A stretch of 64,000 bases of DNA. It comes from Octopus sinensis (taxonomy: Eukaryota). The stretch is from the NCBI RefSeq assembly GCF_006345805.1, contig NW_021835141.1, positions 1 to 64,000 on the forward strand, written 5' to 3'. The position numbers and the translations under genes are program-made. Positions within the stretch are counted from its first letter, which is position 1. The number at the start of each line of letters is the position of its first letter. The notes under the pieces were generated by a model that was given only the letters and a program-made list of their open reading frames with translations, made no database searches and was not told the origin of the DNA. Shown one piece after another: positions 1-64,000 of the stretch.

Positions 1-330
1 AAAGATCGAGATGCGAGGTTTAAGCTGAAGACCTGTAACTGAATTCCACGTATTTATTGAGCGCACAACAACCCAGCTCTGGCATAGATCTTATCGTAAA
101 TTTATGAACCAATGCGATTGGTGGAACTGTAAAAGTGGGCGTGAACTCGTCTGACAGGTTTAATTATTGGAAAGAGATGGTTTGATATTGTCACACAATA
201 ATTAGCAAAATATTTTGATGAATGAGAGACACGTGTAATGTGAAATGATTCCTGTTTCTGGATATTATGATATATTTATTTACTAATGTTGTTATTTAAT
301 ATTCTTTGTTATTCTTGGGAAACTGTTTTA
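1..330 (-). promoter_or_regulatory. Conserved upstream/5' block of the tandem C4-like gene unit (copy 0; its exon 1 would lie just left of the window)
   Basis: Near-identical to 20751-21080, 40351-40690 and 57643-57975, each starting ~49 nt upstream of an exon-1 ATG. Contains CCAATGCGATTGG at 109-121. Promoter function is inferred from position. Confidence 0.6.
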
Positions 331-336
331 ATATTC

Positions 337-811
337 AGGAGTGGCTGTGTGGTAAGAAGCTTGCTTACCAACCACATGGTTCCGGGTTCTGTCCCACTGC
401 TTGGCATCTTGGGCATGTGTCTTCTGCTGTAGCCTCGGGCCGACCAATGACTTGTGAGTGGAGTTGGTAGACGGTAACTGAAAGAAGCCTGTCGAATATA
501 TGTATATATATATATATATGTATATATATATATATATGTATGTATGTGTGTGTAAATATATGCATATATATATATATATGTATGTATGTGTGTGTAAATG
601 TTTGTGTGTCAGTGTTTGTCCCCCTACCATCGCTTGACAACCGATGCTGGTGTGCTTACGTCCCCGTCACTTAGACGTTCGGCAAAAAGAGATCGATAGA
701 ATAAGTACTGGGCTTACAAAGAATAAGTCCTGGGGTCGATATGCTCGACTAAAGGCGGTGCTCTAGCATGGCCGCAGTCAAATGACTGCAACAAGTAAAA
801 GAGTTAAGAGT
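337..811 (+). mobile_element. tRNA-derived SINE (family 1) with internal TA/TG microsatellite
   Basis: A-box-like TGGCTGTGTGG and B-box-like GGTTC(T)GTCCC head, body, and AAGAGT-type tail. Related copies at 19290-19740, 38985-39740, 56740-56950 and reversed at 1844-2080. Confidence 0.8.
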
Positions 812-1843
812 AAAAGAGTGAGAATATTTCGTTCAACCAACAAATACACAGACGCACACACACATACACACACACCACAAAAACACACACACACACACTA
901 CTCTCACACACACAAGCACACATACACACACACACACACACACACATACACAGTAATCGCAAGACTTAATCTAATGAAGTCTAATGTTCGGTTTGGATTC
1001 TTCACAAGAAGCGTTAATCTGATTAGAAAAGTTTTATGGGAATATGAAAATCAAAACCTACGAATTCCCACCCACCCACACATATACACACACACATATA
1101 CACACACACATATATACACACACATATATACACACACACATATATACACACACACATATATACATACATACTTTCATACATACAAGTTTTTATGCATGTG
1201 TATATGAATGTAAGCATGTAAATATCTATAGACACATTCACACTTACATATATACGTACATACATATATACATACATAAATATATACATACACACATACA
1301 TATGTACAAACGTACATACGTGCAAGCATATGTTTGTGTGAGTGTATCTTTATATGTATGAATGTATAAATGTAGGTATGCATGTATATATGTATATGTG
1401 TGTGTGTGTATTAAGAGATAGATGAATACTTGCATATATACATATATACACGCACATGTATGTGTGTGTATCTTCGTATGTATGAATGTATGAATATATA
1501 TATTTATGTATGCATGGATGCATGCATGTGTGTGTTTATATATATATATGTATTGATAGATAGATGATTACATACATACATATTATACTTATATACATAT
1601 ATACATAGGCAGACAGATTTCTTTTTTGTCTGTTTCATTCATTAGACTGCCGCCTGGACCAGTTTTTAAGGGAACTAAACTCCCTCAAGGTCTATTTTCG
1701 TTGTAAGCCTGGTATTTACTGTATCATTTTCTTACGCAGGGCCACTAAGTTACGGGGATGTAAACATAACAACACCGATGGTGAAACGGTGCTGGAGGAA
1801 ACACCGATACGCCCGCACCCGTATATATGTATATATAAGTATA

Positions 1844-2080
1844 TCATTTGACTGCGGCCATGCTGGAGCACCGCCTTTAGTCGAACAACTAGACCCTGGG
1901 ACTTAAACACACCAGCATCTGTTGTGAAGCAATGCTAGAAGGACAAACACAGACAAACAAACACAGACAAACAAACATATACATACACACACACACACAC
2001 ACACACACACATATATATATATATATATATATATATATTTATACAACCGGCTTCTTTCAGTTTCCGTCTACCAAATCCAC
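1844..2080 (-). mobile_element. Truncated family 1 SINE, cut by the rDNA block
   Basis: Reverse complement of the SINE at 337-811; ends abruptly at ...ccaaatccac (2080), directly abutting 28S sequence. Confidence 0.7.
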
Positions 2081-60357: not shown

Positions 60358-61030
60358 ACATACATACATACATACATACATACATACATACATACATACA
60401 TGCATACATACATACATGCATACATACATACATGCATACATACATACATACATACATACAAACATACATACATGCATACATACATACATACATGCATACA
60501 TACATGCATACATTCATGCATGCATACATGCATACATACATGCATACATACATACATACTTACTTACATACATGCATACATACATACATGCATACATACA
60601 TACATACATACATACATACAAACATACATACATGCATACATACATGCATACATTCATGCATGCATACATGCATACATACATGCATACATACATACATACA
60701 TACTTACATGCATACATACATACATACTTACTTACATACATACATACATACTTGCATACATACATGCATACATCATACATACATGCATACACATACATAC
60801 ATACTTACATGCATACATACATACAATACTTACTTACATACATACATACATACATACTTGCATACATACATGCATACACATGCATACATACATATATACA
60901 TACATACATGCATACAACATCATACATACATACATGCATACATGCATACATACATACATGCATACATACATACATACATACATACATACATACATACATG
61001 CATACATACATACATACATACATGCATACA
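60358..61030. repeat. (TACA/TGCA)n microsatellite
   Basis: Visible. Confidence 0.95.
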
Positions 61031-62992
61031 AAAATATCCTGTTCATGTTGTTGAAATTCCAATGAAAGATACTTGGAACTAAGTTAGAAGCCGTCTCTCT
61101 TTCTGTTGGCCAGAAATATTCTATTAAAACCGAATAATGACATTCATACATATTTTTAGCTAGTCATTATCACTAGCTTTGAATATGTTTCTTCTTGTTT
61201 TATAAATCATAGCAAAACATACAGGTACAGTGTCTCCCATTTGAAACTCAATTCGCAAGTGCACCTCCCGTATGTACTGCATATGTACGGCGGAATTCCA
61301 TAGTTATGATAAAATTTTCTTTGATGAAGCATATTAGACCCCTCAGATATAGTTTGACCTAATTTAATATATATGTGTGTGTGTGTGTGTGTGTGTGTGT
61401 GTGTGTGTGTGTGTGTTTATGTGTGCGTGTGTTTGTGTGTGTGTGTGTGTGTTTGTGTGTGTGTGTGTGTGTGTGTGTTTGTGTGTGTGTAATACTCTCG
61501 GTTTGGCCCTCGAAATAAGGTTAATTCGAAATAAACTACAAAATAAATCTTACAGCCATGTCAGATTTCAACAAAGTCCCATAATTCTTCCTATTGTAAT
61601 GGCGGGTTGCATATGCAGCTGCGCATGCTCTGTACAGCTTAAACACTTGGCGGTCGTTTTAACTCTCTAATTATGCCGCTGAATCAAAAGATGAATTTGA
61701 AGATCTACCAGCGTCCGTATTCTCTGCAATTGTTTACGATTTACAACCAGGAAAATATTTGTATTCTAGAGAAACGAATGCAGATTTACACATCAGACTA
61801 ATAATAGTGGGATAGTAAACATTAATAATCTTTAATCTTTATTGCAGCTTGATGTTGTTTAACCGAACCCTTCGTTTATCTAACAAATATTCGACATCGA
61901 CACTCCAACATACTGTCATGAATCCTATTGGATATAACGTGACGGTCACAACATCTCAGCCTTCTTACACACAGCATCCGTGCTTGCCCTGACTATATTT
62001 GCTCTCTTTACACTCACTTTTATGGGTGTTGTATTCGTTTCGCATGAAATGTATTCAGCTTCTAGGATCCATCCTTTCTTCGAGTCTGGTATGTTTACGT
62101 AGATGAGTGAAAGAAATCGTCGTATTTGATGATCTCTGTCGCTGAAATGAGGCAATTTTTCTGGTTGATTTCATTTCTTATTCTTGTATATCAGCGTTTA
62201 GTGTATGACGTGTATGTTGTGTGCATCGAGTTTCGTTTTGTATCTTATTTTGAAGAGAGGTGGGAATTTTGTGATATAGATTTAGGTTGGCAGGACCAAT
62301 ACTCATTTAGACAGTCTTTTGAGGGATTGATCGTGTAAATTCCACATTCTCAGAAAGGTTAAATTGAACATTTTGTGATATTTCTAAAGTTGACGATAAA
62401 TAGGTTTTATAAGATATGGGGTAGGAATGGATCGGAAAGCTTTCCTGATTAATAACGGAAAATAGAATGGATTGTGTGGAAGTATCTGGTTGTTGTTGAA
62501 AGAATCATTTAAGTTCTGTGCTAAGTAATGTAGCGGTTCATGGCTCCTTGTCAGAATCCGAGTTGTAATTTGAACCCAAGCTGTCGGAGATAGTAGCGTC
62601 GAGTATTAGACTTTCTAAGGCTGTGCATGAAAAGCTGATATAATTCTATGGTGGTACTTTATTTGGGGTTTGTTGAATCATGAGACAGAAGACAAAATAC
62701 CGTTAAACAAAATAACATTTTATTTCAACGATAAGTTTGATAAACTGAAATCTTACAAAATGTTTTCTAGAATCATTTCGACAGATTTAGATTTTTCTTG
62801 TTTTTGAGGATATTTCTGGCATTCTACGTCGCCTCTTTTGTATTGTTTGAATATCTTCTGTAAACTAGTACAACAGTTTATTGTAACGATAGACATACTT
62901 TAAAGAAAATATTAGGTAACACAATTAATACTTTATGTTATTTATTGTAATTCACAGACATATTTTCATATGGAACCGAATTTAATTTCTAT

Positions 62993-63488
62993 TCAATATT
63001 TACTGCAGACAACGCAGGTTAATTCTTGACCTTCGACATACGGTGGGCATGGCAATGAGCCACAAACAGCCTCAACGAAATATAATAAAGCTCCATTTTC
63101 GTTTCGGTAACCCGCTGGATCAGCTTCTGGTGCATAATCCACACACACATATTCATGTCTGCCTTTATGACCATGACGCTCCGTCATCAAATATCCTGAA
63201 TACTCAGCTGTCCAACCAGCGTAACACTGTGTCCTGGCTGGTAACATCATAACAACAGCAGGTTGTCGTGTCAAACAGACAGCGCACGGAACGTTGTGAT
63301 CATGAAGTGATTTAGCGTTAGCAAAAGAAAAAGTTTATTTGAGTAGTGGGAAATTTCATATTCACTGCCATAAATGTAACCACCTTTTTCAACTTCAGTC
63401 GTATAATTGGCCCAAATGGGATCGTTAGGTAAACACAAGAGATTACTTCCGCCACCTGTGTGGTCAAAGAATTGTCCACCAACCACAC
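62993..63488 (-). CDS. Exon 4 of gene C (5' exons beyond the window); one 1 nt deletion in an A-run
   Basis: Acceptor ctAG at 63489; C4-like domain is open except for a single missing A in gcaaaagaaaaagttt (~63322-63337); 496 nt = 500-3-1. Confidence 0.75.
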
Positions 63489-64000
63489 CTAGAATTGGTA
63501 AGAATAAATCAAGTAAAAAAGAAGATATTACGTAAAATTATATATGAAATAACGGAAACATTCATTACAGTTTGACCCTTAAAAGAAGTCATGTTTAGCA
63601 ACGTGTGAAGGAATTGTGGTGTATATATGTTAGTGTTTATGTGAGTGCAAGAAGTGTCGCTGTATGCATGAGATCCTAGCTGTGCATTTGCATTCTCTTC
63701 ATATATATATATATATATATATATATATATATATATATATATCGAAGTAAGCAACAAGGATATCCAGAGATAATGCAGTACGATTGTTTCATGCAACTCC
63801 ATTTAATTGAACAATACAATCATTACATTAATTTAAAATATAGAGCAACCTTATGCTGCACAAATACATAGGATTTAATTAAATTGAAACAGATTGACAC
63901 ATTAGTATAATTATACCTAAAATTTCCAAGAAGTTAAGGAGATACACAAAGAACATGTTGTCTCTACATCAGCATAGAAGTTAATAAAATTATCAAGAAA

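Follow-up and report, generated by a model that had tools for sequence, protein, structure and literature searches.

Multigene families that evolve by birth-and-death are described by the model of Nei and Rooney, and the vertebrate MHC, immunoglobulin and olfactory receptor clusters are its known examples. In cephalopods, the expansions of protocadherin and zinc-finger genes are comparable tandem families. At the protein level, NC1 domains are chain-selective assembly modules, which form trimers that pair head-to-head into hexamers. Such a domain is found in collagen IV and in the spongin short-chain collagens (Exposito 1991 and Aouacheria 2006, cited after Fidler et al. 2017, PMC5395295). The spongin NC1 domain contains ten cysteines, seven of which are shared with collagen IV and three of which are spongin-specific, and has no HSQ motif (PMC5395295).

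Here we describe an octopus locus that resembles these systems and differs from each of them. The window, i.e. the whole stretch of 64,000 nt which was analysed, probably belongs, in our view, to a large array of head-to-tail units on a single octopus chromosome, evolving by birth-and-death with homogenisation at the 5’ end of its units and encoding a type II membrane protein with an NC1-like domain. Public octopus genomes already include annotations of these genes; we found no publication on the array or on the protein architecture.

A tandem array of a four-exon gene

A preliminary description of the window had reported a repeated block starting at positions 1, 20751, 40351 and 57643, with spacings of 20750, 19600 and 17292 bp. 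Self-BLAST reproduced all of these values. The 338-bp block recurs with 93.5-96% identity, the copy at 1-338 being 96.2% identical to each of those at 20751-21090 and 40351-40690 and 93.5% identical to that at 57643-57982. The units are colinear across most of their introns at 76-95% identity, which is far above chance. Mapping of octopus homologues onto the window (tblastn) placed the exons of a gene with four exons on the minus strand, and five head-to-tail units are touched by the window. The block ends 49 nt before the ATG in units I, II and III. Its description as an upstream block was right as to the placement, provided that upstream is read as higher coordinates, since the genes lie on the minus strand. 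The 5’ flanking blocks, all on the minus strand, are located at 1..338 (unit 0, a promoter/5’-UTR module whose exon 1 lies just past the left window edge), 20751..21090 (unit I), 40351..40690 (unit II) and 57643..57982 (unit III). The tandem array of the four-exon gene is confirmed as real and is not a chance repeat.

Unit II contains gene A, with exon 1 at 40159..40302, exon 2 at 34485..34536, exon 3 at 31417..31491 (start of the NC1-like domain, with the first conserved cysteine) and exon 4 at 29377..29876 (NC1-like domain and TGA stop), all mapped by homologues on the minus strand. The spliced coding sequence of 771 nt is stop-free and corresponds to 256 aa, and every intron is of the GT-AG type. 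Exon 4 shares 85% identity with proteins of O. vulgaris and O. sinensis that are annotated as short-chain collagen C4-like. Judged from the sequence, gene A is the sole intact unit in view, and it may be silent.

Unit I retains exon 1 (20559..20702, minus strand), a signal anchor of 48 codons with a GT donor which is 83-96% identical to octopus proteins in tblastn, and exon 2 (15301..15352, minus strand; 52 nt with AG/GT borders, homologue mapping). Exon mapping agreed with the earlier count of five units and with the states assigned to them, except that the statement that one unit lacks exon 3 was incomplete: unit I is also devoid of exon 4, apart from an old relic. The missing part amounts to approximately 5.6 kb including both exons and is present in the matching O. 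vulgaris unit. Positions 15837-16435 of the O. vulgaris locus L001 correspond to window positions 15225-14628 and positions 22001-24526 to 14430-11908; nothing in the window corresponds to the region between them (16435-22001), in which exons 3 and 4 are located. A (CATA)n microsatellite (14033..14622, TRF) marks the deletion junction. The relic (13126..13296, minus strand; 171 nt, 57 codons) is 47-58% identical to exon 4 of the homologues. O. vulgaris has this relic as well, annotated there as the tail of P0013, and a further relic lies at locus L003 (22481-22708).

In unit III, homologue mapping placed exon 1 (57451..57594), a first copy of exon 2 (52321..52372), exon 3 (45767..45841) and a broken exon 4 (43247..43746), all on the minus strand. 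An old internal duplication (46290..50565, minus strand), 75-77% identical to its source, carries a variant exon SLLDLLCCPETVNIVLPSKT (50283-50224, minus strand), which resembles exon 1 in its 3’ end and in the start of the intron that follows it. The duplication also contains a second exon 2 (48662-48611, minus strand, homologue mapping) and a 690-bp inverted piece (46314-47007). Exon 4 is broken by one additional A within a run of A, by the loss of one G and by a TAT>TAA change, which amount to a +1 frameshift, a -1 frameshift and a TAA stop codon; the O. sinensis counterpart, with 98.4% nucleotide identity, is intact. This unit, termed B in the preliminary description, had been characterized as fused and disrupted. 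Both properties are present, but the fusion is old and is not the cause of the disruption, because the double-exon-2 architecture occurs twice, with intact exon 4, at the O. sinensis locus L002. Unit B was apparently disabled by the frameshifts and the stop. Only exon 4 of unit IV is in view (62993..63488, minus strand), with a single 1-nt deletion causing a -1 frameshift; its exons 1-3 lie past the right window edge. A 3-nt in-frame deletion is common to this exon, O. vulgaris Ov_1 and O. sinensis Os_3.

Different cargo had been proposed for each gap between units, and this held for two gaps. Between units I and 0 lies a scrambled rDNA block (2045..9550, plus strand; Rfam matches and a reading of the boundaries). 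It runs from 28S model position ~403-471 to the 28S 3’ end at 7343, split by a ~1.3-kb non-rRNA insert (4250-5588), and continues with 5.8S (8601-8759), ITS2 and the 28S 5’ end (9271-~9550); Rfam revealed no 18S in the block. The ten longest open stretches of 4200-8340, five of them inside the insert, gave no Pfam match and no reverse transcriptase. A 28S-specific LINE of the R4 type would be expected to carry coding sequence for a reverse transcriptase or endonuclease within 28S, so the R4-like LINE that the preliminary description had listed beside the rDNA is at most a candidate. Between units II and I, Pfam matches correspond to a degraded Penelope-like retroelement (24300..27600, minus strand). 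Its reverse transcriptase frame (25934-26779; RVT_1, E=1.6e-5, 25.2 bits, cut-off 29.6), for which 468 homologues were found, is followed downstream by a GIY-YIG frame (24897-25352; E=0.0047, 17.6 bits, cut-off 22.6), both on the minus strand. This is the order of Penelope elements, with both scores under the Pfam gathering cut-offs and the element frameshifted. The rDNA block is missing from O. vulgaris L001 and O. sinensis L002 and the Penelope-like element from the sampled sister-genome units, and both are real lineage-specific cargo. The region which had been labelled RTE UTR, a label that found no confirmation, is kept in many sister-genome units; it was rejected as cargo and assigned to the basic unit.

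A collagen-less protein with a probable NC1-type domain

The product of gene A has 193 homologues, the best of which are Octopus proteins annotated as short-chain collagen C4-like, and the family is present in lophotrochozoans, cnidarians and cephalochordates. The earlier reading of a membrane-anchored C4-like gene was well founded. Exon 1 encodes a hydrophobic stretch with a Kyte-Doolittle 19-residue maximum of 2.67 at residues 15-33, preceded by R8 and R13. We used the AF2 model of the O. vulgaris paralogue P0001 (pLDDT 83.7), the closest full-length relative, which shares 85% identity with gene A in the exon-4 part; the model has a helix at residues 16-48. A single N-terminal hydrophobic segment, a more positive N-terminal flank and a Cys-rich C-terminal domain are the features of a type II signal anchor, which may nevertheless be cleaved.

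The C-terminal domain contains ten conserved cysteines, of which C81, C109, C160, C163, C180, C207, C250 and C253 are invariant and C234 and C239 are conserved to at least 90%. Gene A encodes no HSQ motif. The cysteine count and the absence of HSQ agree with the description of the spongin NC1 domain (PMC5395295). Homology to this group is also indicated by phmmer, which aligned the whole domain with E-values of 1e-37 to 1e-41 to Branchiostoma short-chain collagen C4-like proteins containing the Pfam Collagen domain PF01391. In Foldseek searches with the P0001 model the top 41 PDB matches were all collagen IV NC1 (Pfam C4, PF01413; PDB 1LI1, 1M3D, 1T60, 5NAY), the sole fold family matched, with a best E-value of 9.2e-7 and a probability of 1.00 but a TM-score of only 0.35-0.42 and an rmsd of ~9 Å. 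At the sequence level, Pfam C4 was not matched (hmmscan at E<=10 gave only one unrelated weak match), and neither phmmer nor a 30-sequence profile matched an NC1 chain or any other PDB sequence. Based on the model, the ten-cysteine domain is probably of the spongin/collagen IV NC1 type, since its fold matches only NC1, with a low TM-score.

In contrast to spongin short-chain collagens, the octopus proteins lack the Gly-X-Y domain: gene A encodes no run of three or more Gly-X-Y triplets and has no Pfam Collagen match, and PF01391 is precomputed in none of the Octopus or Argonauta homologues. This argues for a collagen-less relative of the short-chain collagens and against a short-chain collagen in the strict sense. 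Further differences are a putative long signal anchor replacing the cleavable signal peptide and the amplification into a large tandem array on a single chromosome. Unlike collagen IV, the octopus protein also has no triple helix. A peptide of an O. vulgaris paralogue was detected in the ink proteome (PMC10142993), and an intronless 1.1-kb contig in the SRR8281674 read-run assembly encodes a homologue with the transmembrane segment and the NC1 domain.

Exon 1 supplies a putative short cytoplasmic tail and the single hydrophobic signal anchor, exon 2 a short linker and exons 3-4 the ten-cysteine domain. The encoded protein is most likely a type II membrane protein and would display the NC1-like domain outside the cell or shed it after cleavage. 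There the domain may form oligomers or attach to matrix in the manner of NC1 domains.

Probable birth-and-death and homogenisation

Corresponding arrays exist in sister genomes. At the O. sinensis locus L002 at least seven units are present in 106 kb, all with an open exon 4; the O. vulgaris locus L001 has two units and the exon-4 relic, and O. bimaculoides has the matching four exons in units of 14-16.5 kb. We counted 14 clusters in O. sinensis, 10 in O. vulgaris and 5 in O. bimaculoides, on one chromosome-scale contig per species; a few further copies are located elsewhere.

Exon 4 groups by orthologue and not by genome, namely into (W_B, Os_1, Os_2), (W_A, Os_4) and (W_IV, Ov_1, Os_3). Its dS is 0.02-0.30 within the O. 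vulgaris group and 0.31-0.69 to O. bimaculoides; putative orthologues have dS values of 0.02, 0.10 and 0.15, the orthology between window units and sampled loci being imperfect. The dN/dS over the whole exon is 0.3-0.6 and exceeds 1.5 in just two of 26 sliding windows, so that neither positive selection nor a recognition role is evident. Recognition or defence, with which the preliminary description had associated the rapid turnover, is a hypothetical role. The grouping across genomes fits birth-and-death, and so do the broken exon 4 of units III and IV, the relics and the loss of exons 3-4 from unit I relative to O. vulgaris. Evolution by duplication and loss, the core of the earlier reading, is supported by this grouping, by the dead and truncated copies and by the structural differences between genomes. 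With known birth-and-death families the array shares head-to-tail units, lineage-specific amplification, orthologue groups common to several species, pseudogenes and relics, and transposons between units. It differs from a plain family of this kind by one near-uniform module, the 5’ block with exon 1, which is 94-100% identical across all copies of the O. vulgaris group and 60-87% across the O. bimaculoides copies. This uniformity suggests a mixed process, with past homogenisation on top of birth-and-death.

Ongoing within-genome gene conversion or unequal exchange could keep the units alike, as in concerted evolution, and the contrast between the uniform module and the introns (76-95%) or exon 4 (dS 0.17-0.30) as well as the very uneven pS along exon 4 (0.03-0.49), expected from patchy conversion, would be in line with it. 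We consider this improbable, since the exon-4 copies sort by orthologue over three genomes, with a shared indel, and pseudogenes and relics persist. Moreover, the window 5’ modules are 95-97% identical to each other and 95-99% identical to O. sinensis copies, which gives no hint that species-specific homogenisation is still going on. An assembly artefact, with repeated units that stem from uncollapsed haplotypes or from a duplication introduced by mis-assembly, is hardly conceivable. Of the four copies of exon 4 in the window three are defective, while all those sampled in the sister genomes are open, which could hint at a lower-quality assembly; but the units are 5-25% different, with differing insertions, an inversion and a deletion, and single units have distinct counterparts in the independent O. 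sinensis and O. vulgaris assemblies. Since the same array occurs in O. sinensis, O. vulgaris and O. bimaculoides, an assembly duplicate appears excluded, and haplotype duplication, raised in the preliminary description as the alternative, was not supported.

Other explanations concern the state of the copies. It is unlikely, yet deserves consideration, that sequencing errors account for the indels of units III and IV, in which case up to three units could be functional and decay would be confined to unit I. The extra A belongs to a run of A7/A8, bases were lost from GG and beside a T-run, the W_IV/Ov_1 pair has a dN/dS of 0.11, as for a constrained gene, and all nine exon-4 copies sampled in sister genomes are open. 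On the other hand, the TAT>TAA substitution in unit III is untypical of indel error, and three lesions per 500 nt are many for a polished assembly. Quite unlikely, too, is that the array forms a graveyard at this end, in which even gene A is unexpressed, and that functional members are located elsewhere. Of the four copies of exon 4 in view a single one is open, and large insertions (rDNA, Penelope-like) separate units; however, gene A has kept an open frame, canonical splice sites and the conserved 5’ module, and its dN/dS against the nearest O. sinensis copy is 0.19.

According to the birth-and-death reading with 5’ homogenisation, the array would grow through unequal crossing-over among its units. 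A basic unit measures ~11-16 kb, and the window units have been extended to 17-21 kb by the rDNA block, the Penelope-like element, microsatellites and the internal duplication. Decay would proceed by deletion and frameshift, which in the window left one unit intact, one without exons 3-4 and two with exon 4 disrupted. Within the O. vulgaris group, the copies sampled probably originated later than the separation from O. bimaculoides and had diverged from each other before the genome of the window parted from those of O. sinensis and O. vulgaris. The uniform 5’ block and exon 1 could be explained by a gene-conversion episode in the common ancestor.

Implications for cephalopod gene families

The mechanism of array evolution is ordinary, but it is well documented here in a single window, which provides a clean example of growth and decay, with a deletion within a unit at a microsatellite, a duplication inside another unit, point lesions, insertions of a retroelement and of rDNA, and a promoter module that is homogenised locally. 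Since NC1 domains are chain-selective assembly modules, one may speculate, with considerable reserve, that octopods made the spongin/collagen IV NC1 module into a collagen-less, membrane-anchored surface family with dozens of variable copies, serving as a combinatorial recognition code or as shed binders. If true, this would represent a code for cell-cell or cell-matrix recognition, or binding proteins shed into ink or mucus, and the variable exon-4 patches would be the specificity surface. Lineage-specific expansions (protocadherins, zinc fingers, receptors) figure prominently in the biology of cephalopod genomes. To these the array adds a large family with fast turnover, whose domain dates to the origin of the animal extracellular matrix and is found here without the collagen helix and tied to the membrane.

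Structure of the tandem array

The window consists of AT-rich animal DNA in which (CATA)n and (AC)n microsatellites are plentiful. Self-BLAST revealed that the block at positions 1-338 is repeated at 20751, 40351 and 57643 with 96.2, 96.2 and 93.5% identity, respectively. The positions and the resulting spacings of 20750, 19600 and 17292 bp agree with those given in a preliminary description of this DNA. The introns of the units are mostly colinear and 76-95% identical. The repetition in the window is true segmental repetition and not a product of chance.

Mapping of octopus proteins to the exons and reading of the junctions placed all genes on the minus strand. 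The repeated block lies upstream of exon 1 and ends 49 nt from its ATG, and we therefore regard it as a promoter/5'-UTR module. The gene has four exons of 144, 52, 75 and 500 nt, the last with the stop codon included. In unit II (gene A; the units are numbered 0 to IV from left to right) they are located at 40302-40159, 34536-34485, 31491-31417 and 29876-29377 and are separated by GT-AG introns throughout; this gene is intact, with a predicted product of 256 aa. In unit III, exon 1 is located at 57594-57451, exon 2 is present twice (52372-52321 and 48662-48611) and exon 3 lies at 45841-45767; its exon 4 (43746-43247) has one A too many in an A-run, lacks a G and contains a stop through a TAT>TAA change. 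In unit I, exons 1 and 2 (20702-20559 and 15352-15301) are present, while the protein mapping detected no exon 3 and, of exon 4, only a relic of 171 nt (13296-13126). Unit IV is in view with exon 4 alone (63488-62993, 1-nt deletion) and unit 0 with its 5' block alone (1-338), both on the minus strand as well. Thus, the earlier inventory of five units and their states was correct.

Long (AC)n/(CATA)n tracts are found further upstream of every 5' block (782-1300, 21359-21739, 40721-41567, 58019-59805 and 60358-61030), and such microsatellites may be where the array breaks or undergoes exchange. Long "ORFs" rich in H/T/Y/I or C/V/M, and sub-threshold Rfam microRNA matches at 1.1-1.5 kb and 11.8-12.1 kb, were rejected as artefacts of these repeats. 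The window also harbours three minisatellites: a 311-bp unit repeated 2.2 times in intron 1 of unit II (39141-39831; single copy in unit I), two copies of a 160-bp unit with 98% identity (27885-28207), and a 112-bp unit repeated 1.9 times (23366-23575).

Sister loci and intergenic cargo

The best colinear DNA matches were found in O. sinensis chromosome CM016876.1 (approximately 95% over 10.3 kb) and in O. vulgaris OX597833.1 (95-96%). This places the window within the O. vulgaris group of octopuses, as DNA of a third closely related species or as a stretch of one of these two arrays outside the loci sampled. In a 106-kb O. sinensis locus (L002), seven or more units follow one another head to tail, their exons 1 spaced 11-23 kb apart, and all exon 4 copies are open. 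The two O. bimaculoides loci L003 and L004 have the same four exons in units of 14-16.5 kb and an exon-4 relic of their own. This decayed relic lies between two units of L003 (22481-22708; 31% identity, two stops); it parallels the relic at 13296-13126 of the window, and partial units are therefore a recurrent by-product of the array. Among the matches listed, there are 14 protein clusters in O. sinensis, 10 in O. vulgaris and 5 in O. bimaculoides, on one chromosome-scale contig per species. In addition, there are a few copies on unplaced contigs of small size and, on a different chromosome, an O. sinensis copy that is more divergent. The array is a real and large one, and its position is conserved across these genomes; this excludes an artefact of haplotype duplication in the assembly.

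The O. vulgaris locus (L001) matches both sides of unit I with 92-96% identity and carries between these flanks approximately 5.6 kb with exons 3 and 4, which are missing from the window. The junction in unit I is a (CATA)n tract (14033-14622). We infer a deletion in the lineage of the window. The exon-4 relic at 13296-13126 is common to the window and O. vulgaris. In unit III, the preliminary description had proposed a fused and disrupted gene. Both attributes apply, but the fusion is not the disabling change: the double-exon-2 structure is also present in two units of L002, in which exon 4 is open. The 4.3-kb extra segment of unit III (46290-50565) has diverged to only 75-77% identity with its source. 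Thus, the fusion is old and has itself been duplicated since. A 690-bp intron-2 segment of unit III (46314-47007) is inverted with respect to unit II (31947-32621; 90% identity).

The gaps between the units differ in their cargo. Between units I and 0, where rDNA had been noted, Rfam matches and reading of the boundaries indeed delimited an rDNA block on the plus strand (approximately 2045-9550). It starts with 28S from model position ~403-471 through the 3' end at 7343, interrupted around model positions ~1890-2280 by a non-rRNA insert of approximately 1.3 kb with a GC content of ~0.5 (4250-5588, plus strand). A 1.26-kb spacer, 5.8S (8601-8759), ITS2 and the 5' part of 28S follow, the latter comprising the first ~330 model positions (24-358) at 9271-~9550. 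No 18S was found in 2045-9550. In its order, the block corresponds to a circularly permuted 5.8S-ITS2-28S piece. It could have arisen by integration of a circular or tandem 5.8S-28S (27S-precursor-like) copy, which would fit the distance of only ~45-110 model positions between the 28S break points. The homology to O. vulgaris ends precisely at window position 9550 and L001 is devoid of rRNA; therefore, the rDNA block is lineage-specific cargo. LINE coding sequence was searched for in open stretches of at least 80 aa from the six frames of 4200-8650: none of the ten longest, five of which lie within the 28S insert, matched Pfam, and the R4-like LINE of the preliminary description was thus not confirmed. 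A megablast of the insert against a phage collection, a database ill-suited for this question, also gave no match. The insert might conceivably derive from the 3' non-coding region of a 28S-specific retroelement.

The gap between units II and I carries, as described before, a degraded Penelope-like element on the minus strand, with a reverse transcriptase and a GIY-YIG domain downstream; it is not present in the sister-genome units sampled. In L001, GC-rich Penelope-like sequence (29308-30102) with 74% identity to window 25881-26672 sits just past the end of the O. vulgaris match at window position 9550, the edge of the rDNA block. This spot has taken different insertions in O. vulgaris and in the genome of the window. 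The gap between units III and II (41600-43246), said to hold little cargo, is indeed kept at 94-96% identity in three O. sinensis units. However, the putative "RTE UTR" assigned as cargo to the gap between units IV and III (61031-62992) is not unit-specific: four or five O. sinensis units as well as O. vulgaris contain this gap with 88-96% identity, and it is thus part of the basic unit.

The encoded protein

The sole long clean ORF of interest (29377-29874, minus strand) has 193 homologues, the best of which are "short-chain collagen C4-like" proteins of O. vulgaris, O. sinensis and O. bimaculoides with up to 85% identity. Exon 1 encodes an N-terminal stretch of 14 residues and then a hydrophobic segment of 19 residues (mean Kyte-Doolittle value 2.67) with a slightly more positive N-terminal flank. 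At its position, the AlphaFold model of the O. vulgaris paralogue P0001, which was used as a stand-in for the gene A protein, shows a single long helix. Since a typical cleaved signal peptide is shorter and closer to the N-terminus, the segment probably serves as a type II signal anchor. The remainder of the protein is a short linker followed by a domain with ten conserved cysteines.

The gene A protein contains neither a Gly-X-Y run nor an HSQ motif. It matched no Pfam family in hmmscan and no PDB entry, collagen IV included, in searches by phmmer and with a profile of 30 sequences. By contrast to these negative sequence searches, a fold search with the P0001 model (mean pLDDT 83.7) provided the link to collagen IV: the top 41 PDB matches were all collagen IV NC1 (best E 9e-7, probability 1.00), with TM-scores of just 0.35-0.42. 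Spongins consist of a short collagenous domain and an NC1 domain, which shares seven cysteines with collagen IV, has three of its own and lacks the HSQ motif (Fidler et al. 2017, PMC5395295). The octopus domain agrees with this description as far as NC1 is concerned and is clearly homologous to amphioxus members with collagen repeats. Unlike the spongins, the octopus protein is devoid of a collagenous part and, judging from sequence and model, would be a collagen-less, membrane-anchored relative. The designation "membrane-anchored C4-like" can thus be kept if C4 is taken to refer to sponge short-chain collagen C4 and collagen IV NC1, while the anchor is a prediction. Complement C4 was rejected, as the name derives from the sponge collagen and the fold search pointed to collagen IV NC1.

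A variant exon, SLLDLLCCPETVNIVLPSKT, is located in unit III at 50283-50224 (minus strand) and is included in the O. sinensis gene models P0002, P0004, P0006 and P0010. In P0004 the N-terminus is supplied by an intronic "MPFRGLQ..." element, followed by the variant exon; such products would be without membrane anchor. The exon-like element ("MPFRGLQ...RVYC..DS") is found on the minus strand in intron 2 of every unit (14794-14681, 33619-33506, 47718-47614 and 51555-51443). The window copies of the element and of the variant exon are degenerate. Of the element copies, only that at 33619 keeps its ATG, and that at 51555 is frameshifted.

Evolution of the array and possible function

Exon 4 of unit III is 98.4% identical to the O. 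sinensis copy Os_1 (dS 0.02), and that of gene A is 96.6% identical to Os_4 (dS 0.10). Exon 4 of unit IV has a dS of ~0.15 with the O. vulgaris copy Ov_1 and with Os_3, and the three have a 3-nt deletion in common. Between paralogues dS is 0.13-0.30, with the exception of Os_1, Os_2 and unit III (0.02-0.06) and of Ov_1 and Os_3 (0.12). The sampled copies of the vulgaris group form one clade against two O. bimaculoides copies, from which they differ by a dS of 0.31-0.69. Because of this orthologue pairing and clade, together with the pseudogenes, relics and structural differences, the array has a birth-and-death signature with lineage-specific amplification, as had been proposed. However, this mode of evolution does not extend to the uniform 5' module.

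The upstream block of 390 nt and exon 1 are 94-100% identical whichever copies of the window, O. sinensis and O. vulgaris are compared; in the first 150 nt of intron 1 the identity is 77-99%. The O. bimaculoides counterparts of the 5' regions are just 60-87% alike. The window copies are not more similar to one another than to the O. sinensis copies, which argues against continuing species-specific conversion as the source of the uniformity. It probably dates back to the common ancestor of the vulgaris group, in which the 5' modules were homogenised or a single one had spread very recently. Alternatively, selection on the promoter could account for the similarity of these copies. In exon 4, the synonymous divergence among paralogues varies more than ten-fold along 500 nt (pS 0.03-0.49 in 12-codon windows). 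The paralogue pS is 0.03-0.09 at codons ~55-90 and ~139-156, and 0.25-0.49 at codons 1-24 and 97-120. This unevenness suggests patchy, mosaic gene conversion within the exon as well.

Selection on exon 4 was examined by pairwise Nei-Gojobori analysis and sliding windows. The whole-exon dN/dS is 0.3-0.6 for most paralogue pairs and 0.1-0.2 in two of three orthologue pairs; the value of 0.69 for unit III and Os_1 is based on seven changes only. Amino-acid variation is concentrated in four patches (exon-4 residues ~7-11, 31-36, 45-48 and 103-112). There was no robust signal of positive selection in exon 4, with values above 1.5 in two of 26 sliding windows, which contain few substitutions. The NC1-type domain is under constraint and contains variable patches.

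The evidence for production of relatives is of an indirect kind: a peptide of an O. vulgaris paralogue is present in the ink proteome (PMC10142993), and an intronless 1.1-kb contig assembled from the read run SRR8281674 encodes a full homologue with the TM and NC1 parts. The best functional reading would be a putative surface-displayed or shed NC1-type domain for oligomerisation or matrix binding; the earlier suggestion of a role in recognition, in defence or as effector is conceivable. The gene family and the gene models are already public; our literature search yielded no description of the octopus array or of a protein combining the anchor with NC1. The array in the window adds a new and well-resolved case to a known class of systems.
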